DNA of 63,690 bases, filler included, from Choristocarpus tenellus KU-1152 (lineage: Eukaryota > Protista > Phaeophyceae): assembly GCA_964200185.2 (NCBI GenBank). It is 9 parts of 9 records of this genome, joined end to end, with 100 filler letters (N's around TTAATTAATTAA, not from the genome) between each part and the next. Parts side by side here need not be neighbours in the genome. Positions count along the whole stretch, not along the records: positions 1 to 11,737 come from CAXNAD020002162.1; 8 more parts are not named here. One strand, written 5' to 3'. Below, piece after piece: positions 1-11,737 of the stretch (position 1 is its first letter; every line of letters begins with the position of its first letter). A program made the translations under genes and the position numbers. A model generated the notes under the pieces. That model ran no database searches. It was not told the origin of the DNA and saw nothing but the letters and a program-made list of their open reading frames with translations.

Positions 1-63
1 GCAATGGGCGGTGTGGACGCCCTGGACATTTCCGACGTCAAGATCTTCCCGGGCTGTTTGTAA
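1..63 (+). CDS. Possible 3' end of an unidentified gene (AMGGVDALDISDVKIFPGCL*), truncated by the window edge
   Basis: Open frame 1-60 with GC3-rich, coding-like codons ending in TAA at 61-63; product not recognised. Confidence 0.35.
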   Translation, partial: AMGGVDALDISDVKIFPGCL

Positions 64-875
64 AGAACGAGGGGGGAAGGGCAGGGATATGGATATTGTG
101 AGGGCTCCGCATCCTCTACTTTGGCAGAATTTTGGTCATGTTCTCAAATTGGGTGCAGATTTCAGTTGGGGTTTTTTTCCTGCAGGGGTAAAACCCTACC
201 ACTTCCAACTTGCCCATTGTGTGTTTTTTTTTCAGTTGCCCCTCGCTTCAATCTCTCAGTAACAATAATATGGTACACGAACGAATGAAAAATTCCAGGC
301 AGGCGTGCATGCCCCTGTCAGTACACAAAACTTTCTTCTTTTATTTTCGTCTCCAGTAGGCTCCTTCCCCTTTCCGTACTTCATAGACCCAAGCCAACAA
401 CCTTCACAAGCGCCATCAATTATCCAGTCCTTGCACACACACACACAACCCATCAGTGTGCAAGCAAACGCGTTCGCGCAAGACACCCGGGTAGCAAAAT
501 CAAATGTTCTGTGCATGAGAACAGAACATGATACAGTTATCCAAGAAGAACAGGCAACTTTGACAGAGGACACTACTGCTACTAGACAGAAATTTATGCA
601 ATGGGTGTCCACGTCAGAAGCAGGAGGAGGGAGGGGTGCGCACGCTCGCATACGAAACACACACAGACATCAAAAACAAGAAACACCCGAAGCAAGTTAC
701 CTCGGCTTCCTTTTATTTGGTTCAGGCTAGGATGTTTTTTTCCTCAACAAGAATCCATTCCTCTCCCATCTGTTTTGTGGAGTCCACTTCACTATCAGTG
801 GCAAGCACTGTAGAGTGTGTGGTTGACTCACGAGAGCAAAATAAGGTGATGAATTCCTCCAAATCCTAACCTTAC

Positions 876-2120
876 CTCAGTGAAGGGCCTGAACATGAGC
901 TCTCCAGTCACCACCGCCCCCTCTTCCACAATGAGCTTGTTGTATGTGATCTTCATGAGGCAGCAGGGTGGAGGGGGGTGGTGGAATGCAAGGGGGCAAG
1001 TCAACCTTTTCATTCTTCTATCAAATAGAGTTGGTATTTGTCCTTGTAATAATACCTCATTCTTGGTACTGTCTCCTAAGCCATAGAACGAGCATTCGTA
1101 AGACTTTTAGGTCGACGTTTCAGAACTCAAGATAAGACAATTTTCCCGTCCCTATCCAACCCTTCTTTTCAAACTAAACGCACACAATTGTATGCAATAG
1201 GGGGTGATTTCTTCAGCTATCGATATGTTTACAATCGAAAGTGAACATTGAGCAAATAGCAGGACCAGCGAGAGGTCCACAGGAAATCCTTTCAACACTA
1301 AGGGGCACACAGTCGGATGGTAGAGCGAGCTATTTTGCTCGATAAACATATATTGCAATGTTGGTGAACTCAAGTTCTCCTTCTTGCCCCTCATCCACTC
1401 TTTACATGCCACTGCAGCACATATTCGGACCAAATTGAACTTGAGGTACCACAAAGATGAAAGAAGCAGGACCAATAGACTCACGCTGCCTCCAACTCTG
1501 GCAGCTTTTCTGACGATCAAACGGTTCGAAGTAACCAAGTCTGTCCCCTCAAAAGAGCCTGCGACTTCAGCGTCATCACAGCTCACCAAACCTCGCACAC
1601 AACCGCCTGAACACCCAAGATGCAATGATCAAATTTCCAGGAGAAGGTAAGATGGGAAGCATGGTTGCAGAATAGCAACATATCGTATCGAAGGAGGGAG
1701 GACGAACAATATTCCATGTTGGCACTGCATTCAGCAAATCCAGACTTTCCAAACGAAGTTGTTTCGCCTTTTTGCACCTACTCGGATAACGCAATGCCAC
1801 CCAATCAAGCCCTGCCTACCTCTTTGGACTACAAGATACTTGGTCTCAATCTTGCCGTCCAGATTTCCACGCACAATAACTGCGTCGCAATCGCTGATGT
1901 CGGCATTCATGATGACGAAAGTCCCTACCTCCAAAACCTTCGTGGTTCCCGGAGGTACGATAGACTTGGGGGAGGGAGGTTTAACAACCTTTTTAACTGG
2001 CTTGGGCTCAGGCACAGTCTCTTCAGGCACAGATGGGGGAACTACAGGACTCGTCTCGATCTTCGGGTGTGGGCTCTTGCTCCTCCCACGAGAGTGCTTC
2101 GTCGATTTCCTGCTAAACAT
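876..2120 (-). CDS. Bactofilin A (polymer-forming cytoskeletal protein) with N-terminal MFSRK peptide and Pro/Lys-rich linker. Exons 2120-1820, 1606-1485, 950-876. The 3' end is uncertain: either read-through to the stop at 828 or a short last exon near 508-500
   Basis: Spliced product MFSRKSTK...PEPKPVKKVVKPPSPK...VLEVGTFVIMNADISDCDAVIVRGNLDGKIETKYLVVQRGGCVRGLVSCDDAEVAGSFEGTDLVTSNRLIVRKAARVGGSITYNKLIVEEGAVVTGELMF has the bactofilin beta-helix repeat pattern and the typical C-terminal L-x-V-E-E-G-A-x-x-x-G motif. GT-AG introns (GTAGGC..TTCAG, GTGAGT..TGAAG) keep the frame. Confidence 0.88.
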
Positions 2121-2904
2121 TTCTGATTCTAGGGTCCTTGACAAACCACAAAGACAACCCTCCTAGCCTCTTGAATATCAACAAGAGCAACCCTCTCGTC
2201 ACGCCGTTCCCACGATCAAAACGCAGTTAGTCACTCCCTCTAAGCGTGCTTCAGGACGAGATGACGATATCTGTGTTCCCCTTGAGCTGTTGGTTTCAGG
2301 ATAGAAAGGTCTCTAGTCAGTTGACAATCCTTTACTTGTTTTACTCCCAACTTCGAACCATCGATCTACAACAACAATTGTACTATAGTACCTGATGTCG
2401 TGAAAAATTAGAAATCATAATCACACTGCATTGTCGTATTTTGGTTCGCCGAACGGTTTTTCTTCACTTGCAAACGGAGGGTCATTACAAAAAAAATACG
2501 AAGCCTTTTATGTGTTGGTTAAGGACCACTTTCTAGGGGGTTGGAGGGGGAAGGTGGTTGGGGTATACTGCGTGCGCTTTCGAGACGCGCGATTTTACTG
2601 GATGACCATTAAAATGTTCTTATGTCTATATTTCTACCTATTTTTCCATTATATATTTTGTTGTAGATATGGGGATACAACAACTAATGTACGAATTCAA
2701 ATAATTCAACAATCTAACACCAAATGTTATGTTACAATTATCTCTTTTTGTAACATCTGACTTGTAGAAGTCTATCTGCTATTTAGTATTCTTGTTCCCT
2801 CTAATGACAACTGTCTTCCCGCAAAATGATCATCACAACAGTAATTAAGTTATTGTGAAGCAGTAGTCTCTTAAAATAACCACCTACATAATATTATCTT
2901 AGTC

Positions 2905-2970
2905 ATATTATATTATTATGCCCTCTGACATTTTGCAGATGTGTCAGGGGGAAACCAATGAAAACTATAT
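2905..2970 (-). mobile_element. Short 5'-truncated copy of the 3' end of the CRE-like non-LTR element
   Basis: Reverse complement (GCAAAATGTCAGAGGGCATAATAATAT) matches the element ends at ~15830-15857 and ~55688-55706. Confidence 0.5.
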
Positions 2971-4640
2971 ACATATATATATGTGTATATAAAATGTCCT
3001 CAACATAAGAATACTATAAGACAATGCGTTAGTCATATCATAGTTTGGTGTGCGATTTCTAAACGCCCAACATAAGTAACCACAAATAAATCGTTGTTTG
3101 ATATTCTATTTCATGTCTATTGTAATTTTGTTACCCTCGAGACTGTCTGTGATGGGGGTACAACAAGAAGCAATATATAAGGTAGAGACTAAAAGCAACA
3201 CATCATATAAAACAATAACCACTGAAAGGAGTGTAATGTACTTCAACCTGAAGACACCACAACAAGACAGGATTTCACACAGACTACACGTGGGATTTTT
3301 CTTCTCTTGTTTCAACAAACACATCTTTGTTTATAGAAGTGCCGCAATTTCAGGGGTAGTTTCAGCTGTTTACTGATGATGAGGTTGAAGAGCAAACCAA
3401 AAATATAGGCACTCACAAATAATGAGATTGACCACAGGTAAAACAAAACCCTGAATGTGTATGTCCTCCACATTCAAAACATCACTTAAATCTTCCCTCT
3501 GGCAATACACTAAAACCAGACCATAACAAATAAGCCGGTGGTCCCTTGCCGTGGAAGCAACATGTATGGAGTGAGGGGGGATGGAGCAGTATATAATTCT
3601 GTGATCGGCAATGTGATATCTCAACTACATTGTTGTTGATGTGGTATTGTCACAATAAATAATAATAATAATAGGTTATATTTTGTTTTCAAACACAGCA
3701 TTAATAGTACAACAGGAGGAGAGGACTATTTAATATCAGAAATACCACCCCGCGTCAGTGTATGTATAACAATCAATTAAGCAGGAAAGCTACAAAAAGC
3801 AACTATGAAATTGTTGAAATTGTACCTGGACTCTCAAACAAACACTATGAGGCCGGACCAAAATTACACTTCGCATATACATTTCCTGAGTGATGTTCTG
3901 AGGGATTACTCTCCCTCTTGACTTGTCTCTCTCCTTTTCCTTGCCTCTTGTGGGTCTTCTTCAGTACGACGAACCTGTTGGCTTGTTTCCATTTGTTTCA
4001 CAGCAGATTAAAAAATATATGTACCCTTACTATATATGGTGTATGGAAATCAAATCAAATTTGCTTGGGAAAAAACTTAACCTCTCCTCCCAGCAATCCA
4101 ATCTTCACATTTCGTAAACAGAATGTGTTAGGATGATCACTCTCTACACCTCTACATAATTATTACTGGTACTTCTAGTAGTAGTAGTGTTGTTGTAGAA
4201 CAGAAAAAGAAAAGGAAAGTATCTTACCAGCTTATACCGGGTATCAAGTGTTTCTATAAATAGTATTAAGTATATCGGGCGTGATTTGGGTATCAACTGA
4301 TCATCCGATTATTAGACAGCTGCTCTACAGATACAAGTTGAATTGAATATTAAAATATCGAAAAATAGTAGAACAAGACAAACAGTAACAATACTAGTAG
4401 TAATAGTTGGATTCTTACTCCTTAAACTCTTCATCCTGTTTCTGGACCCTACAATTACCGTTGTTGACTTAATAGTAGTTCCAATAATTGTAGTTGTCAA
4501 TTTACAAAAAACCATTTCAACATCACACCACTGGACCACCAGATCGTGGGTGAGTTAGGCACACAGCACCACTATCAACAAACCTAGCCGCCAAACCTCT
4601 CTCCACCGGAACTCGTTTTTCAAGTGGTCGCAGCGACACC

Positions 4641-5542
4641 ATGCCCGCCGCTCCACGCAGCCAGAGTGCGTCCATGGCGGGACGAGTGATAATTGGTAAG
4701 GGTATCACCGTAAAGGGCGACATCAAGAACTGTGAAGAGGTCATTGTCAGGGGGTTCTTCGACGCGGGAAACGTGGAGGCCAAGAACGTCATTGTCGAGC
4801 AGGATGGTAAGGTTACAGTGTGATTCGCTCTTCCTTTTCGAATTGAGCGGATATAGACACGGCTCTACCCGTGTGTGTCCTTGTATCTGCTTGCCCTTAA
4901 GCGGCCACGTCCTTATTCTAAGAATGAGAGGTCTTTCAGATAGTACTTCACAAGCCATTAATGACTGTATACATGCCGGTGAAATACAGGCATTTTAACT
5001 GGTGCAACGAAGGCGCATAATGCCAAGATCTCGGGGAAATTCGACGGTGACTTGAGACTCAAGGAAGGTCTGAGCGTCACCAGCAGCGGAGAGGCGAAGG
5101 GGGTGAGGTTTGTTCCCTCTTTTGTCTGAAGGGGCGTGTTTAGGAAGCGCTGAAGTTACTCACTGGCCTGAACTTAAGTTGGAAAGACATGGGTGGGAAT
5201 ACCGAGTTTTGGATCTCCCCCCCCTTTCCGATCCATATTTGCCTGTGCACTCCATCGCATTCCAATATTTGTAGATTTTACATCTATTTCTATGCGCGAC
5301 GTGCTGTACTTGAACCCCCAAACCTCTCATGTCAGCAAGATATGTATGATGTAAGTCTCTTGCTCTGTGCGTGGGAAGGGCCCTAACTGTGCTGTGCCCA
5401 CTAGTTGTGTGCTCTAGGTATTGACCAAAAAGCCTATACCTCATCTCTTAATCAGATCATTCGGTACAGGGGAATTCAGGTGGAGAATGGTGGCAGGCTG
5501 TTTGGCGATATCCAATTTGCCACTGACGAAGATGGAGTTTAA
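4641..5542 (+). CDS. Bactofilin B, minimal 121-aa protein. Exons 4641-4806, 4990-5102, 5456-5542
   Basis: Spliced product MPAAPRSQSASMAGRVIIGKGITVKGDIKNCEEVIVRGFFDAGNVEAKNVIVEQDGILTGATKAHNAKISGKFDGDLRLKEGLSVTSSGEAKGIIRYRGIQVENGGRLFGDIQFATDEDGV*. Classic bactofilin start (IIGKGITVKGDI) and end (IQVENGGRLFG); introns GTAAGG..TACAG and GTGAGG..ATCAG are in frame. Confidence 0.93.
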
Positions 5543-8500
5543 TTTCGGGGAAATACGAGCCTAATGGGCTCTTGTTTACGTTGAAAAGTCGACGAATGTG
5601 AAAAGAGGGATGGGTTGGAGGAGAGGGGAACAAACGCCTTATTCTCCGTCTGCTGATTCACTTTCGTTGGCACGAACGAAAGTGTATTGTGAAAAGTGTG
5701 TGAAAATTAATGGAAGATCAAATGTGGGGGTGTACTGGGGGTGTTTATTGATGTCAGACTGTTTTTTGTTTTGAGGAGTAAATGGTGGATGGGCCAAGCA
5801 AGTCTCATTTGTAGACGCAAGAGGCGAGAGATCATGTAGCTTTTTGTTTTAGATGTAATTGAAAACGAGACCCCTTTGTTTTTCTGTTAAACTGTTAAAC
5901 TTGCCTGTGAAGCTGTGCTGTAGCTTTCGGTAAAAGTGTGGTGTCAGTGGGTGAAGGGGTGAAGAGGAGAGAGTACGGCAAGTGCAGTACAGTCTAGATT
6001 TGGTCTTGATTGACAACCAACTGGAACAGAAATGAAGCAAGAATATTTTTGAAGTAAAATCTATGCTGGACCAATTTTGATTGGCAGGTGTGTATAGCGA
6101 AAGCGAAGCCTCAGGTTGTGCTGTTCTTAAGTGTTGTTGGTCATGCTCACCACATTTCTGTTTTGCTTTAGGTAGTCGGTGTTGAGGGTAGGGTAGGGTA
6201 GGGCAGGGCAGGATAGGATGGATAGTTCCCCTGACTGACTCCTTGAACAGCTGCCTCCTTAGGCTACTCCAGTTGCACATTACAGGCATTCATTCAGCCC
6301 TCGGCATTGGCCATGCACAATGGCCATGTGCAGGTGTGATCATGGTTGTGTGGCGTATCCCCTGTTAGTTCTGACCCCCTCTACACTTTACACCGATTCA
6401 TTGTGCTACATTTTTTTTAAGTAGCTGAGGTTGTCACTGACAATCCTCTTTGCTGTTTGACCAAGTCATGTTGACTGGTCTACGTTCCTGCACTTCTACT
6501 GATTGCTTTCATAGCAGTAACCTCACAAAAGCACCGCCTCGACTTGACCTCCTCTGGGGTAGTTACAGAGAATGATCCTCTACTCTGCGCTGCCTTGCAT
6601 TTTGATGTAATGTGTTGGTGCAACAAGATTGGGTGAAGTAACTGGTCGTTTCGAGTGTCCTTCTAGCGTGCCTCTCCGATACATGTCATGCTTTTGTTAC
6701 ACATAGTGGTGAGTTGAATGTGCTGTGGATCAGCAAACAGTATCACAGTGTTCACTGCTGAGTAGGACTGACTGGGGATGGTTCACAGGGAAATGATGAC
6801 TGCTACAGGTTGTCCACCAAAGTGACTAGTAAGGGGCTTCATGGAGCTTTGACTGTCCTGGAATGTTGCGTAGGTGTGGATTATGCTGTAGTGGTTCTTG
6901 TTCGGGAGATGATCAAGTGCAGCAAATACTCATCCTCGGGTGCAGAGTTTCTTGCATCTCTATCACTTAATAAAGAGAGGAATGTTGGTGGTACTCTCAC
7001 TGGCATGTGTTGAGAATAAGGTGTGCTGTAGCATTGAATAGAATTGACTCTACTGTGGTCAACTTAGAACAGGACAACTCGTTCCTAAAGTGTTTCATTA
7101 GACTTGGTATTTCAAGGCTAGGATGCTTTGGTCTACGTAAGATCACATACATGTAATACATTTTTTGTAGATCCTTTTTGTACTTCCTTGTTTTCCATAC
7201 AGGGTTAGGGCTTTTGATCTTGCTCCGCTTAGTACTCTCAAACTGTCTCCCCCCAGGCGCTCCAATTTGCTTGTGAAGTTCAAGCACATCTCCTATCTGC
7301 CCTTTATGCAGTGGCTGCAAAGGTCATTAGAATTGGGATGACTAATTTTGTGGGTTGTGCATTTGGATCCTTCCAAATTGTGTATTACTGACCACAGTCA
7401 GCATGGTCACAGTTTTGCCGCACATACTCCCTTGAGGGTAAACCCTGCATGGACAGTATAGACCTTTTCTACAATAACTGCTTCAACCCTGCCCAATCCT
7501 CTCATGAATTGAATGACAGGGGGAATTGTACCCAAGGTCATTCCCCAAGTATGCTCCCAACACCTCCACTTGTGCGTGGGCCACATGGACGCCCTCCCAT
7601 ACCCAAGTAAGCCCAAGAAATAGAAAAGATGGCACCAAATGCATTCCTATACATGATTCCTGTATCGCTCGCTTGGTGGGTTTCCTAGAGATCCAGTGAC
7701 GCAATGACATTTTGCCAACACTGATGCAGGAGTTCGTGTTGTGGGTGCCACACCAACGGACAATTTTTGACCTTCATGTTTTTTTTCTTATAACAAGGAA
7801 ACTTTCCAAAATGCGAAAATTGAGTGAGATTCGTATGTTTTCCAAAATCAGGGCTCTTGGATGCAATGGTTCTTACGAGTGCCAGCAAACCCACGTCGAC
7901 CGCTTGATCAGTGCTCTTCTGGTGATTGATGTGCTCCAAAAGTTCTGAATTTCAGTTACGTTGCAGTCCCCATCCTATAGTTGAATCTGAACCTCGAGTC
8001 ACCTCGAAATACTCCTCATAGCCCACACAACTCACCCACAGAGAGTATTAGTTGTGCACCTCCCCATGGTTCATGCTACTCAGATGCTCCGGATCTCTAT
8101 TCCTCACAGGTACTCCACGCTGCACCCACAATCCCTTGAATGCCAATGTAAATGTTTTGTACTAGAGCTCTGTTGTCCATACCATTCTAGTGTCCCATTG
8201 CCCCTTCAACACAAACATGCTGCAGAAAATCATCATTCAGGAGGTGATTAAATTTTCAACATGTATTTGATAGCTATTAATAGAATAACACTTACCTATA
8301 TTCTCATTCCCTATAAGAAAAAGAAGTGGCGCATCATCTATTGATCGTCCGCCTGCCTCATCCTTGCACTACAACCCATCTTGGACTTCACCCATACAAG
8401 GTAGCACTCCAAAGTGAGTACTGGAGTATGCTGTGCCTTACACACATATCCATAACTTCCCCCCAATCAATAGTATGGTGCATGTTCCCTTGTTGCTTGT

Positions 8501-9935
8501 AGCATTGCCTTCCACCCTTGACCCAAACGTGAAACTGTCGCGTACAATAACCAATTCCTCTTTATTAGGAGACTGTGCCAGGTGGGGACGTTCCTGTCAT
8601 GGAGACATTGACTGTAAGATACCCAAGAGTGGAATCTAATGCTGTTGAGACCGTGTTCCGGAGGTTCCCGTTGTCAGGGCTCATGCTGTTAAGGTACAGA
8701 TGGTTGAGATCCCCTCTGCAGTAGAGTATACTGTGCTATTAGTACTGTCTCGAGCAGTACTTACTCTCCCTCAGTGTTACTCCAACATCTCCCTCTACCC
8801 CGAAACGAAATTTCGATAGATCCACCTCTTGTATGTACTAGTAATATCCGGTTCTATCTTGTAACACCAAGAAATCAAACTATGTTGTGCCCCTGGCATC
8901 GTACCCTCCCCCCCACCCCTGCTCCCCCATTTTTTGCTGCGTCCACTCTCCCCTTGGGTATTTTGCTGCTCCCTACTCAAACATCGCAGTGCGCCCTCCA
9001 CATATATTTAGCACAGATATGATCAGTACACGCATACTTACATTGTTTCAGAGTCAGGTTAACCCACCTAGTTGGGATTATGTGGCTGGCGGTAGACGAT
9101 GCCTGAATAGCGGCGTCTTATATTATATTCCAAAAGTGGATTGAATAGTAGAACTAGATCTCTCCCTCTGATCATTTCCTTTAATTATTGATTGAATCGA
9201 GATTATGAATAGGCTGAGAAAAGGTACATGGGTGGTCTGGCAGCAACCAAAAATCTAAACAATAGGTCAACAAGTCCGATATATTGTGTAGATATAATAG
9301 TGTCAATACATGCGACTTAAATTATATTTTGGAGTTTATGAAACCGTCATATCGAACAATCACCTACGATACTCTAAGAAATCCTTAAAAGGGATAAGGT
9401 TGGTGACGTAAATTAAAAACAAGTTCTACCACACCCAGCACCACATTTGTTATCATTGCTGGAGTTCTACACAATATCTACGCAACCTCTCCTTGTACTG
9501 GCTTTACGCGCGCGTTGCTGCTTGTGCGTTGCTTGGGTTCAGTCATCCCTCTGTTCGTCAACAGCAACCACTCGGCTGCTCCCTCAACTCTTCCTGCGTA
9601 AATTCATGCTGACGGTGTCGGCCTGCAGTTCACAATGAAGATCTGCCACCACATTTTTCCGCACGCTGCACTGCCTCGGGATTCGTACATCGGGTAAGGT
9701 TCCTATGACTACAAGAATACTACCGCCAATAGCAGCATATTCCTTTCCCTAATAATGCTTAAGGCTATAGACCATCGAAAACCCCAAAGCCAGATTTGCT
9801 GTTCACACACGTAATATGTGTAAGGATGGAGTACGCTCCCTCGTGTACCCCTCTCTGAGTCTGATAAATGACTGTTGATGTGTACTTGTTCCAATCATAT
9901 GGCGCCCCCTGCAACTGTACTGTATTTGTTCACAA

Positions 9936-10193
9936 GAGCCAAAGTATCTTAGAGGGTAGAGGCGAGTCCATTTGGGAGACAAAATCCAATGTTGCGATTT
10001 TGATGTAATTTTGACTATCGTATTTGTTAGGACGTGTCAATATCCATGTTCTGGAAACACCTTTTCATAACGTATACATTTTACCTACTCGAAAACATTC
10101 TGGAGTAGGAAAACGTTATATTAAAACCATGGGAAGCCAAGCCCCAAATGGACAAACAGGGCAAAACTCGTACCCGCTAAGATACTTTCACTC
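9936..10193 (+). mobile_element. MITE family 1 copy (258 bp)
   Basis: TIRs GAGCCAAAGTATCTTAGAGGGTA / TACCCGCTAAGATACTTTCACTC; flanked by ACAA duplication; internal sequence shared with seven other copies. Confidence 0.85.
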
Positions 10194-10319
10194 ACAACCA
10201 TCTATTGTATGATATCAGCGAAGATGTTCTCACTCTAAATTTTAGTGAACGGAGACTTTTCGAAGATAGTATTGCTAATCAACTATGGACACCACTGGTG
10301 AAGAGGACAATAAGCCAAA

Positions 10320-10570
10320 CTAATTGAAAGGTAGACAGGTTTGGATCCTTTTGCATTCTATGGCCACCTTCTTACACCCTATTTCATTGCTTTACGTCAC
10401 AATAGTGTACACAATATTGATATCCCCCCTCTTTCCACACACAGAGTGACACTACAACTAAAGAAAGACCCTTTCTGCAATGAAATGGCGTATTTTTACC
10501 CTTTCCTTGATCCTTAAAATGCAACCCTGCCTACCTCTCAATTTTTTTGGCTCAATGGGAGGTAGAGCCA
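10320..10570. repeat. Dispersed degenerate repeat shared with ~20540-20800 (unclassified TE relic)
   Basis: Shared blocks such as GGTAGACAGGTTTGGATCCTTTTGCAT vs GGTAGGCAGGTTTGATTCCTTTTGCAT, and GATCCTTAAAATGCAACCCTGCCTA vs GATCCTTAAATGCAACTCTGCCTA. Confidence 0.6.
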
Positions 10571-10949
10571 ATGATGGATCTACCGATCGATTGTTGTGTT
10601 GTCTGCGCATCCTGCTTGCGTATATGACATGTGGCATAATGCACAGGTGTGTTCATTGACCGATGCTCTTTGATTAGTATTCTCTTCTGGATGCGCTAGT
10701 CATACTAAATACAAATAGTTCATAGGTAGTTAATGTTGCTATTATCACCATACTAGTCCGAGGGATCCCGGACTCACAGTCGAAACGATAGTCATAATAA
10801 GTTACTACACACTGCTTGAGATGAGGCAACAAGGATCAAAAGAAAAAAAACAAATGAAATGGAATAGTAAGATGGGGAAAAAAAATGAAAATGAAGAATA
10901 GGACCCGCACAAGAACAACACCCATCACCCAAAAAACAGAAGGGAGAAG

Positions 10950-11103
10950 GGCTCAAAGTATCTGGAGGGGGGGAGTCTACACCAGGGTGTCCATTCGGAC
11001 CCTTCCAGGAGAAGTGCATCTACATGATCTATCCGACGCATGCAACCAAATCACCCAAAAATCGCGATATGGAAAAATGGGGCCGATATGGATACTTTGA
11101 GTC
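10950..11103 (+). mobile_element. MITE family 2 copy (poly-G type)
   Basis: Ends GGCTCAAAGTATCT / GATACTTTGAGTC with AAG TSD; core GTCTACACCAGGGTGTCCATT shared with other copies. Confidence 0.8.
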
Positions 11104-11701
11104 AAGGAAGGAAAGAAAGTTAACCAAGGATGCTAGAGAAAAATCCACGGAGAAAACAGCATCATTCAGCAAAGAGTGATGGTGATGGTTGGCGTTGGTG
11201 GCTTGGGAAACCTTGGCTATTGCATTGGTGTGACGTGCGATAGCTATCACAGCTTCCTTCGAACGCCATTCGGCTATGAACCCCATTGGCCCATTAACCG
11301 CACGCTCATACCACTCCTATTGTATAGTGACTCTGATGCTCCAACCCTCAAGTTCAATCCCAATCTTTTCAAGATCATCTTGGAGGCAAGTCCACCAGTT
11401 CATCTCTTGTGCACCTTGCTTCCATCTTTCCATTCGTAAGCTAGCCAAACATCAATTTCTTGGAAAGTGGCTCATCCCCCATGCGAGCAACTGATCCATT
11501 GAATAGAATCCTCTGCTTGTGCACAGCTAACGCAGTCAATAGAAGTCCCCACGTTATAGGATAACTGGAGTGGTAATGGACAGTCTCACCCACACTTGAT
11601 TCGGTCAAAGGAATTGAGACCAATCCACTTGTGACTCTAATATATGTACGTTCACTCCAAGTCATATATTGTCCTGTTCTGGCATATAATACTTACAATG
11701 G

Positions 11702-11737
11702 GGACCCAAAGTATCTGGGAGGGGGGGAGGGTCTACA
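11702..11737 (+). mobile_element. MITE family 2 left end, truncated at contig end
   Basis: CAAAGTATCTGGGAGGGGGGGAGGGTCTACA runs into the spacer. Confidence 0.65.

Follow-up and report, generated by a model that had tools for sequence, protein, structure and literature searches.

In Myxococcus xanthus the bactofilin paralogs BacN, BacO and BacP co-polymerize and are encoded side by side, and the long disordered C-terminal tail of BacP binds clients. Among eukaryotes, Deng et al. 2019 described bactofilins from stramenopiles (oomycetes, brown algae including Ectocarpus D7G0L1, and some pelagophytes) and in ascomycetes, demonstrated filaments of a Phytophthora bactofilin by electron microscopy and proposed horizontal transfer (10.1101/617639). 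The DNA analyzed here, henceforth the window, is a stretch of 63,690 nucleotides from Choristocarpus tenellus KU-1152 (assembly GCA_964200185.2), and its first part (positions 1 to 11,737, from CAXNAD020002162.1) contains two bactofilin genes, A and B, arranged head to head. Choristocarpus is a member of the Discosporangiales, the order of brown algae that branches earliest. A first-pass annotation, made from the sequence alone, had described the pair as a candidate two-subunit cytoskeleton and had remarked that eukaryotic homologs are noted mainly in stramenopiles and have no established function. The remark on function is fair, and full-text literature searches found no later work on the function of eukaryotic bactofilins; stramenopile bactofilins as such have already been published (10.1101/617639), and C. 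tenellus, a brown alga, is itself a stramenopile. That A and B are spliced, expressed eukaryotic bactofilin genes of C. tenellus, in conserved linkage and with a bactofilin fold predicted for A, we regard as practically certain.

The gene models were examined against three public runs of one study (X1, X2 and X3) that hold this stretch. X1 and X2 are DNA runs, and they are colinear with the genome across genes A and B at even depth. X3 is unlabelled as RNA and behaves as RNA. Its contigs skip exactly the segments between 1606/1820, 950/1485, 4806/4990 and 5102/5456, and the joint to a fourth exon of gene A makes five junctions. The spliced depth in X3 is ~400 for gene A and 500–1200 for gene B, compared to 13–16 for unspliced pieces. 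Since the X3 contigs skip exactly these introns, the models proposed in the first-pass annotation, two intron-containing genes that diverge from start codons 2.5 kb apart and splice through introns that are all GT-AG, are right at these joints, and both genes are expressed in the X3 sample. The five spliceosomal GT-AG introns removed in RNA, orthologs of the same exon structure in seven algal genomes, and a DNA-run depth at the A/B locus equal to that of its flanks leave an exceedingly small probability that contaminating bacterial DNA, or a recent transfer that is now dead, was taken for eukaryotic genes, even though the bactofilin family is overwhelmingly prokaryotic and some of the nearest database relatives come from bacterial metagenome-assembled genomes. 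The contamination and pseudogene readings are ruled out by the spliced transcripts together with synteny.

The first-pass annotation gave gene A an N-terminal tail of ~60 residues and ended the gene at position 876. The tail was recovered in our analysis, but the end was not: 876 is directly followed by GTAAGG, a splice donor, and the gene continues into a fourth exon. A 2511-nt RNA contig that covers 876–950 carries a further 30 nt identical to window positions 24–53, and the end of genomic contig C23418 is the window's first 36 nt, a 36-nt overlap. In C23418, exon 4 (L013:2952 downward) stays open for 110 more codons until a stop at L013:2613. Provided that exon 4 is not spliced again, gene A would encode a protein of ~284 residues with a basic, Pro-rich N-terminal tail of 60 residues, a core of ~105 residues and a low-complexity, disordered C-terminal tail of ~118 residues, the last of which had been missed along with the exon that encodes it. 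The ~2 kb of RNA contig that remain would then be 3' untranslated region (UTR). Exon 1 of gene A holds an MFSRKSTK motif, the Pro/Lys/Ser-rich tail and the first bactofilin beta-helix turns, and it ends in phase 1 at a GT donor (1819–1818). Gene B is, as first described, a minimal core with almost no tails; its exon 1 encodes a short N-terminus of 13 residues followed by the first beta-helix turns and likewise has a phase-1 donor.

Two further observations concern the 3' portions of these genes. The C-terminal tail of gene A (L013:2613–2945) contains two basic-x-Ser motifs of the RRxS type, HRRTIS and RVRRGS; they resemble basophilic protein kinase sites, which hints at control by phosphorylation. 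The X3 contig over gene B exon 3 extends 1794 nt beyond 5700 without a long open frame there, and this extension of ~1.8 kb is either a 3' UTR of unusual length or part of a transcript that overlaps the gene or is unannotated. There is also a strong skew of G over C (+0.40) in 5501–6000.

Family membership was evaluated with the Pfam Bactofilin profile (PF04519; length 98, curated cut-off 27.9 bits). A database entry of gene A, P0003, was found with a profile of exon-1 pieces from A, B and two paralogs against 1.8 billion representatives. P0003 is NCBI CAM9351218.1, 'unnamed protein product, partial [Choristocarpus tenellus]', and is 100% identical to residues 36–163 of spliced A. It scored 60.4 bits (E 2.1e-16, profile positions 9–97 of 98), which bears out the bactofilin assignment of gene A. 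For gene B the assignment stands on a different footing. Single exons of A and B are sub-threshold with E values of ~1e-3, and the two gene B exons searched singly reached 20.5 and 20.0 bits, each under the cut-off. In a six-frame search of the genome the same exons matched the profile colinearly, exon 1 at positions 2–44 (23.3 bits) and exon 2 at positions 39–79 (19.8 bits), and B orthologs that are 83–84% identical to gene B scored 60.8–61.7 bits. Judging from its exons and these close orthologs, gene B very likely belongs to the Bactofilin family.

The fold of gene A was modelled with AlphaFold2 from P0003 and its family alignment. The model is all-beta with a predicted local distance difference test (pLDDT) score of 88.4. 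When it was compared with known structures by VIA-align, the top match was the Thermus bactofilin filament 6rib_A (Z 17.4, root-mean-square deviation 1.4 Å over 99 residues), followed by Caulobacter BacA 2n3d (Z 16.1), and other beta-helices scored no higher than 11.9. The gene A core is thus predicted to be a right-handed bactofilin beta-helix. A Foldseek search of the P0003 model against the PDB, a method that is weak on this repetitive fold, returned no significant match, the best being 2n3d at E 0.26. By sequence, the A-family profile finds BacA at E 1.3e-10; the profile of B orthologs found none among PDB sequences at E ≤ 0.01.

Conserved linkage had been named in the first-pass annotation as a test of the two-subunit reading, and the comparison bears it out. 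In six other genomes the orthologs of A and B are likewise arranged head to head, with starts 0.6–3.6 kb apart (Table 1), and one of the six, Chrysoparadoxa australica, is outside the brown algae. The genes that flank the pair vary, being DHHC in Ectocarpus, DONSON in Discosporangium and a sulfate transporter in Chrysoparadoxa. Compared in translation with the DNA on either side of the orthologous pairs, window positions 5543–11737 gave no match, and neither DHHC nor DONSON is present here. Because the flanks differ while the pair persists, the two genes have been held together as their surroundings changed. The gene orders compared indicate an ancient divergent pair that has apparently remained together since before the split between brown algae and Chrysoparadoxa. 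P0027 of Discosporangium was considered as an A ortholog and rejected, as it is a paralog of the L001 type without a partner gene.

Table 1 Coordinates of the bactofilin pair in the window and of orthologous pairs in other genomes
Feature or locus	Position	Strand	Basis or remark
Gene A exon 1	1820..2120	minus	ATG 2120–2118; sequence and RNA joint 1606/1820; identical to P0003
Gene A exon 2 (beta-helix middle)	1485..1606	minus	Pfam Bactofilin E 0.0012, profile positions 41–78; RNA joints on both sides
Gene A exon 3 (last beta-helix turns, ITYNKLIVEEGAVVTGELMFRPFTE)	876..950	minus	RNA joint 950/1485; GT donor 875–874
Gene A exon 4 start	1..53	minus	Acceptor AG 55–54; RNA contig end matches 24–53; runs off contig
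Gene A 5' UTR, to limit of RNA contig	2121..2360	minus	X3 record 19 spans 1819–2360
Between-transcript region, ~2.2 kb, AT-rich	2361..4593		Dispersed repeats at ~2905–2955 and 3897–3980
Gene B exon 1	4641..4806	plus	ATG 4641; Pfam Bactofilin E 5.8e-4; RNA joint 4806/4990
Gene B exon 2 (beta-helix middle)	4990..5102	plus	Pfam Bactofilin E 8.4e-4; RNA joints
Gene B exon 3 (last turns IIRYRGIQVENGGRLFGDIQFATDEDGV and TAA stop)	5456..5542	plus	RNA joint 5102/5456; alignment
Gene B 3' UTR	5543..5700	plus	X3 record 22 (2040 nt) spans 5455–5700
Ectocarpus sp. 4, L014	A ATG 9543; B ~10630	A minus; B plus	Starts ~1.1 kb apart
E. fasciculatus, L015	A 556; B ~1710		Starts ~1.15 kb apart
Discosporangium, L018	A 1309; B 1886	A minus; B plus	Starts ~0.6 kb apart
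Ascophyllum, L019	A 10001; B 8298	A plus; B minus	Starts ~1.7 kb apart
Pylaiella, L020	A 10001; B exon 1 6352–6209	A plus; B minus	Starts ~3.6 kb apart
Chrysoparadoxa australica (outside brown algae), L017	A-like 9939; B ends 9083	A-like plus; B minus	At most 0.86 kb apart

The relationship of the two genes was examined by comparing their cores. A and B are colinear over the whole core with 32% identity across 112 residues, in agreement with their first description as diverged paralogs. Each of the two core introns is offset by no more than one codon between A and B and has the same phase in both (1 and 0, respectively), and the paralog L001 has the first of these intron positions in common with both. 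Such shared positions and phases fit a duplication within a eukaryotic genome after the introns had been gained.

The two proteins differ at their N-termini. The start of gene A, MFSRKSTK, matches by sequence comparison the membrane-targeting sequence of bacterial bactofilins, which is experimentally defined as MFSKQAKS in Caulobacter BacA, has the consensus MFSKKKK across 14,337 bacterial bactofilins and appears as MFSRKTE at the start of the short form of Proteus CcmA (PMC12448750). Kindred starts are found in the paralog L003 (MFSRKSSK) and in the Ectocarpales A orthologs (MFKKK), and 68 of the 205 family proteins that were fetched begin with MF..[KR]..[KR]. A membrane-targeting function of the motif in a eukaryotic cell is our inference from this likeness. 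The starts of gene B (MPAAPRSQSASMAGR) and of its orthologs (MATPTTAGR) have no such motif. The rate of change also differs: B is 83–84% identical between Choristocarpus and Ectocarpus (81–84% for exon 1 and its ortholog exon), compared to 58% for A and its Cladosiphon ortholog, and on these values B evolves much more slowly than A. Its C-terminal block, IRYRGIQVENGG[KR]LFGDIQFA, is nearly invariant in brown algae and Chrysoparadoxa. The Ectocarpus B orthologs P0017 (L014) and P0014 (L015) carry long N-terminal extensions before MATPTTAGR that are lacking in other species, and these are probably mis-called start sites.

We propose that A and B build one mixed, membrane-associated polymer. By analogy with bacterial and Phytophthora bactofilins, each core would stack end to end and so form nucleotide-independent filaments; A would give membrane attachment as well as tails for regulation or client binding, and B would give core subunits without a tether, which would control how long the polymer is or how densely it is anchored. 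We rate such co-assembly as a serious possibility that falls somewhat short of an even chance. The ancient, expressed pair and the co-assembly model taken together as one picture have slightly better than even prospects in our estimate.

Contact between A and B was examined by complex prediction with P0003, which is a truncated A core, and P0153, the Discosporangium B ortholog that is ~82% identical to B of the window. The prediction scored 0.56 versus 0.00 for the best of three controls and is rated as weak support. Of 78 solved complexes 51 reach the mark applied, as do 2 of 108 mismatched pairs; scores of 0.60 or less account for 5 of the 78 solved complexes but for all 4 of the mismatches that passed. 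The runs share at least 86% of their contacts, and the partner, the Discosporangium B ortholog, has a pLDDT of at least 82 within the complex. The heteropolymer put forward in the first-pass annotation is therefore weakly favored by the A:B prediction and is not established by it; our estimate for co-assembly rises only slightly as a result.

Several points weigh against a mixed, membrane-bound and jointly regulated polymer. Bactofilin filaments have already been solved, so the pass of the A–B pair may be model memory, and the prediction, made with a B from a sister genus and a truncated A, does not distinguish a heteropolymer from a homopolymer. In a FastTree phylogeny of 118 core domains, which is of low resolution, the A clade and the B clade are separate and are not sisters. 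The interface Phe of the bacterial proteins (F105 in Thermus, F130 in Caulobacter) aligns to Val in A and to Leu in B, both hydrophobic, when the A family is aligned by HMMER to 2n3d and 6ria and A is aligned to B. The MF-basic start is missing in some A orthologs, such as those of Discosporangium (MINSLRRKS) and Ascophyllum (MVFGRRKS in the gene model), and membrane binding of the motif was demonstrated only with bacterial lipid mixtures. Expression was evaluated in a single RNA-like run. As for regulation, X3 transcript contigs begin at ~2360 for gene A and ~4594 for gene B, at least 2.2 kb apart, and the RNA depth between the genes is 0 to ~1.5 in most bins, except at two repeat elements where the depth sums other genomic copies. 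When the DNA that separates the two starts was compared among seven species for conserved non-coding blocks, the only matches were within Ectocarpus or were simple repeats. With no conserved block beyond Ectocarpus and a gap of ~2.2 kb between the transcripts, a shared compact promoter is not shown; a shared promoter element is neither shown nor excluded, and the co-regulation suggested in the first-pass annotation was not established.

Part of this evidence would suit A and B acting separately, as filament formers that each make homopolymers at different sites or stages, with their linkage coming from shared regulatory DNA or from an interval that is rarely broken. Sequence identity of 32%, separate clades in the domain tree, the great differences in evolutionary rate and architecture, and the weak prediction for the A–B complex all point in this direction, as do the lone Phytophthora bactofilin that polymerizes by itself and the at least 10 further bactofilin loci of this genome, which are unpaired on their contigs. 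The linkage of A and B, on the other hand, outlasts very deep splits although both flanks change, an anchored long-tailed subunit next to a bare core is the pattern expected for co-assembling paralogs, and the depths of A and B are of similar order in the single RNA run. We regard separate homopolymers as possible but rather doubtful.

A second alternative is that these beta-helix domains have lost polymerization and now do something else, such as acting as a scaffold or adaptor by way of the disordered tails, in which case they would be bactofilin homologs without being cytoskeletal. The substitutions of the interface Phe would be in line with this, but the replacing residues are still hydrophobic, and the A model fits onto a filament subunit with a deviation of 1.4 Å. 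While Deng et al. were unable to express their Ectocarpus and Neurospora candidates and describe polymerization outside the oomycetes as unproven (10.1101/617639), the terminal turns of B, presumed to be where subunits meet, are almost invariant, and an end-to-end contact of A and B is predicted above every control. We consider a non-polymerizing role improbable. Co-assembly of A and B remains our preferred reading, and in its broadest form it would mean that a bactofilin module of two genes, bacterial in ancestry, is kept by brown algae and their close relatives as a mixed-filament membrane skeleton, with A as the anchor and B as the core; so extended, the proposal is tentative.

The extent of the family was examined by a six-frame Pfam search of the 164-Mb assembly (27,310 contigs), in which the first part of the window is contig C2162. 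The search gave 20 exon-level Bactofilin matches on 17 contigs, and ten loci besides A/B were at or over the cut-off. Further bactofilin loci (L001–L010 and others) are located on C1994, C10596, C13710, C6936, C4443, C22, C3983, C3817, C24137 and C21812, and two of them are annotated as full-length proteins, P0001 and P0002. With ten extra loci, the bactofilin family of Choristocarpus numbers about a dozen genes or more. One of these paralogs, L003, has an MFSRKS start like that of gene A and lacks the first core intron. Beside the paralog on C1994 there is an open frame of 197 residues (L001:6–599; GGELVVEGG...YSLVWFTP) that by eye resembles 2-oxoglutarate/Fe(II) oxygenases.

The annotation of Choristocarpus can be improved at this locus. 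Gene A is represented only as a partial and unnamed product. No Choristocarpus product of gene B was found among the B-type database matches, and gene B therefore seems to be unannotated.

The region between the two genes contains dispersed repeats. At 2905–2955 there is an element of ~45 bp with a 10-bp inverted repeat (CCCTCTGACA ... TGTCAGGGGG). In X1 the contig depth summed over this element is ~117,000, compared to ~19 in its flanks, and the sequences that border it to the left and right are many and varied. These observations point to thousands of dispersed copies, possibly of a hairpin repeat or an element like a miniature inverted-repeat transposable element. Its predicted fold was no better than those of shuffled sequences (z −1.3), and no copy was found in the other ~30 kb of the Choristocarpus genome that were examined. 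A second dispersed repeat, at 3897–3980, has a depth of ~1,200 versus 19 in X1, ~320 versus 7 in X2 and ~180 in X3. Scans of the window for Rfam families and tandem repeats found none.

Since eukaryotic bactofilins are already known, what this locus adds is the deeply conserved pair, the asymmetry of anchor and core, and the expansion of the family. Our full-text literature searches found no mention of the pairing, of a membrane-targeting motif in eukaryotes or of an expansion in brown algae, although such silence does not by itself establish novelty. Two genes linked over hundreds of millions of years, one for an anchored subunit with long tails and the other for a bare core, make a concrete and falsifiable model. 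Ectocarpus has the pair too, and since knock-out tools exist for this genetic model, experiments on localization, gene disruption and co-assembly can be designed directly. The N-terminus of gene A further suggests that a membrane-targeting peptide of bacterial type can persist after transfer to a eukaryote, which is relevant to the integration of cytoskeletal parts that were acquired horizontally. If the proposal is true, this lineage, with its dozen or more paralogs, would have a cytoskeletal system without counterpart in animals, plants and fungi.

The pair was compared with described systems in eukaryotes and bacteria. PiBac of Phytophthora infestans (PITG_07992, UniProt D0N980) is, like A and B, a nuclear, expressed stramenopile member of PF04519 that was presumably acquired from a prokaryote, and its filaments have been shown. 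Unlike PiBac and its stramenopile cluster, Choristocarpus has two diverged paralogs in an asymmetric divergent pair and at least 12 loci. TtBac of Thermus thermophilus (6rib, 6ria) is the best structural match to A and, as a minimal core with short tails, resembles B in its architecture; its sequence identity is ~24%, and it is a single gene. Caulobacter crescentus BacA and BacB are paralogs as A and B are, they co-localize, and the A fold matches BacA at the Z score given above. They differ in their location at the cytoplasmic membrane and in their client, a peptidoglycan synthase that they recruit and that is without counterpart here. BacN, BacO and BacP of M. xanthus are encoded in a same-strand bacterial operon, in contrast to the two separately transcribed, intron-containing genes of Choristocarpus, and the role of the BacP tail is the one that we propose for the tail of gene A.

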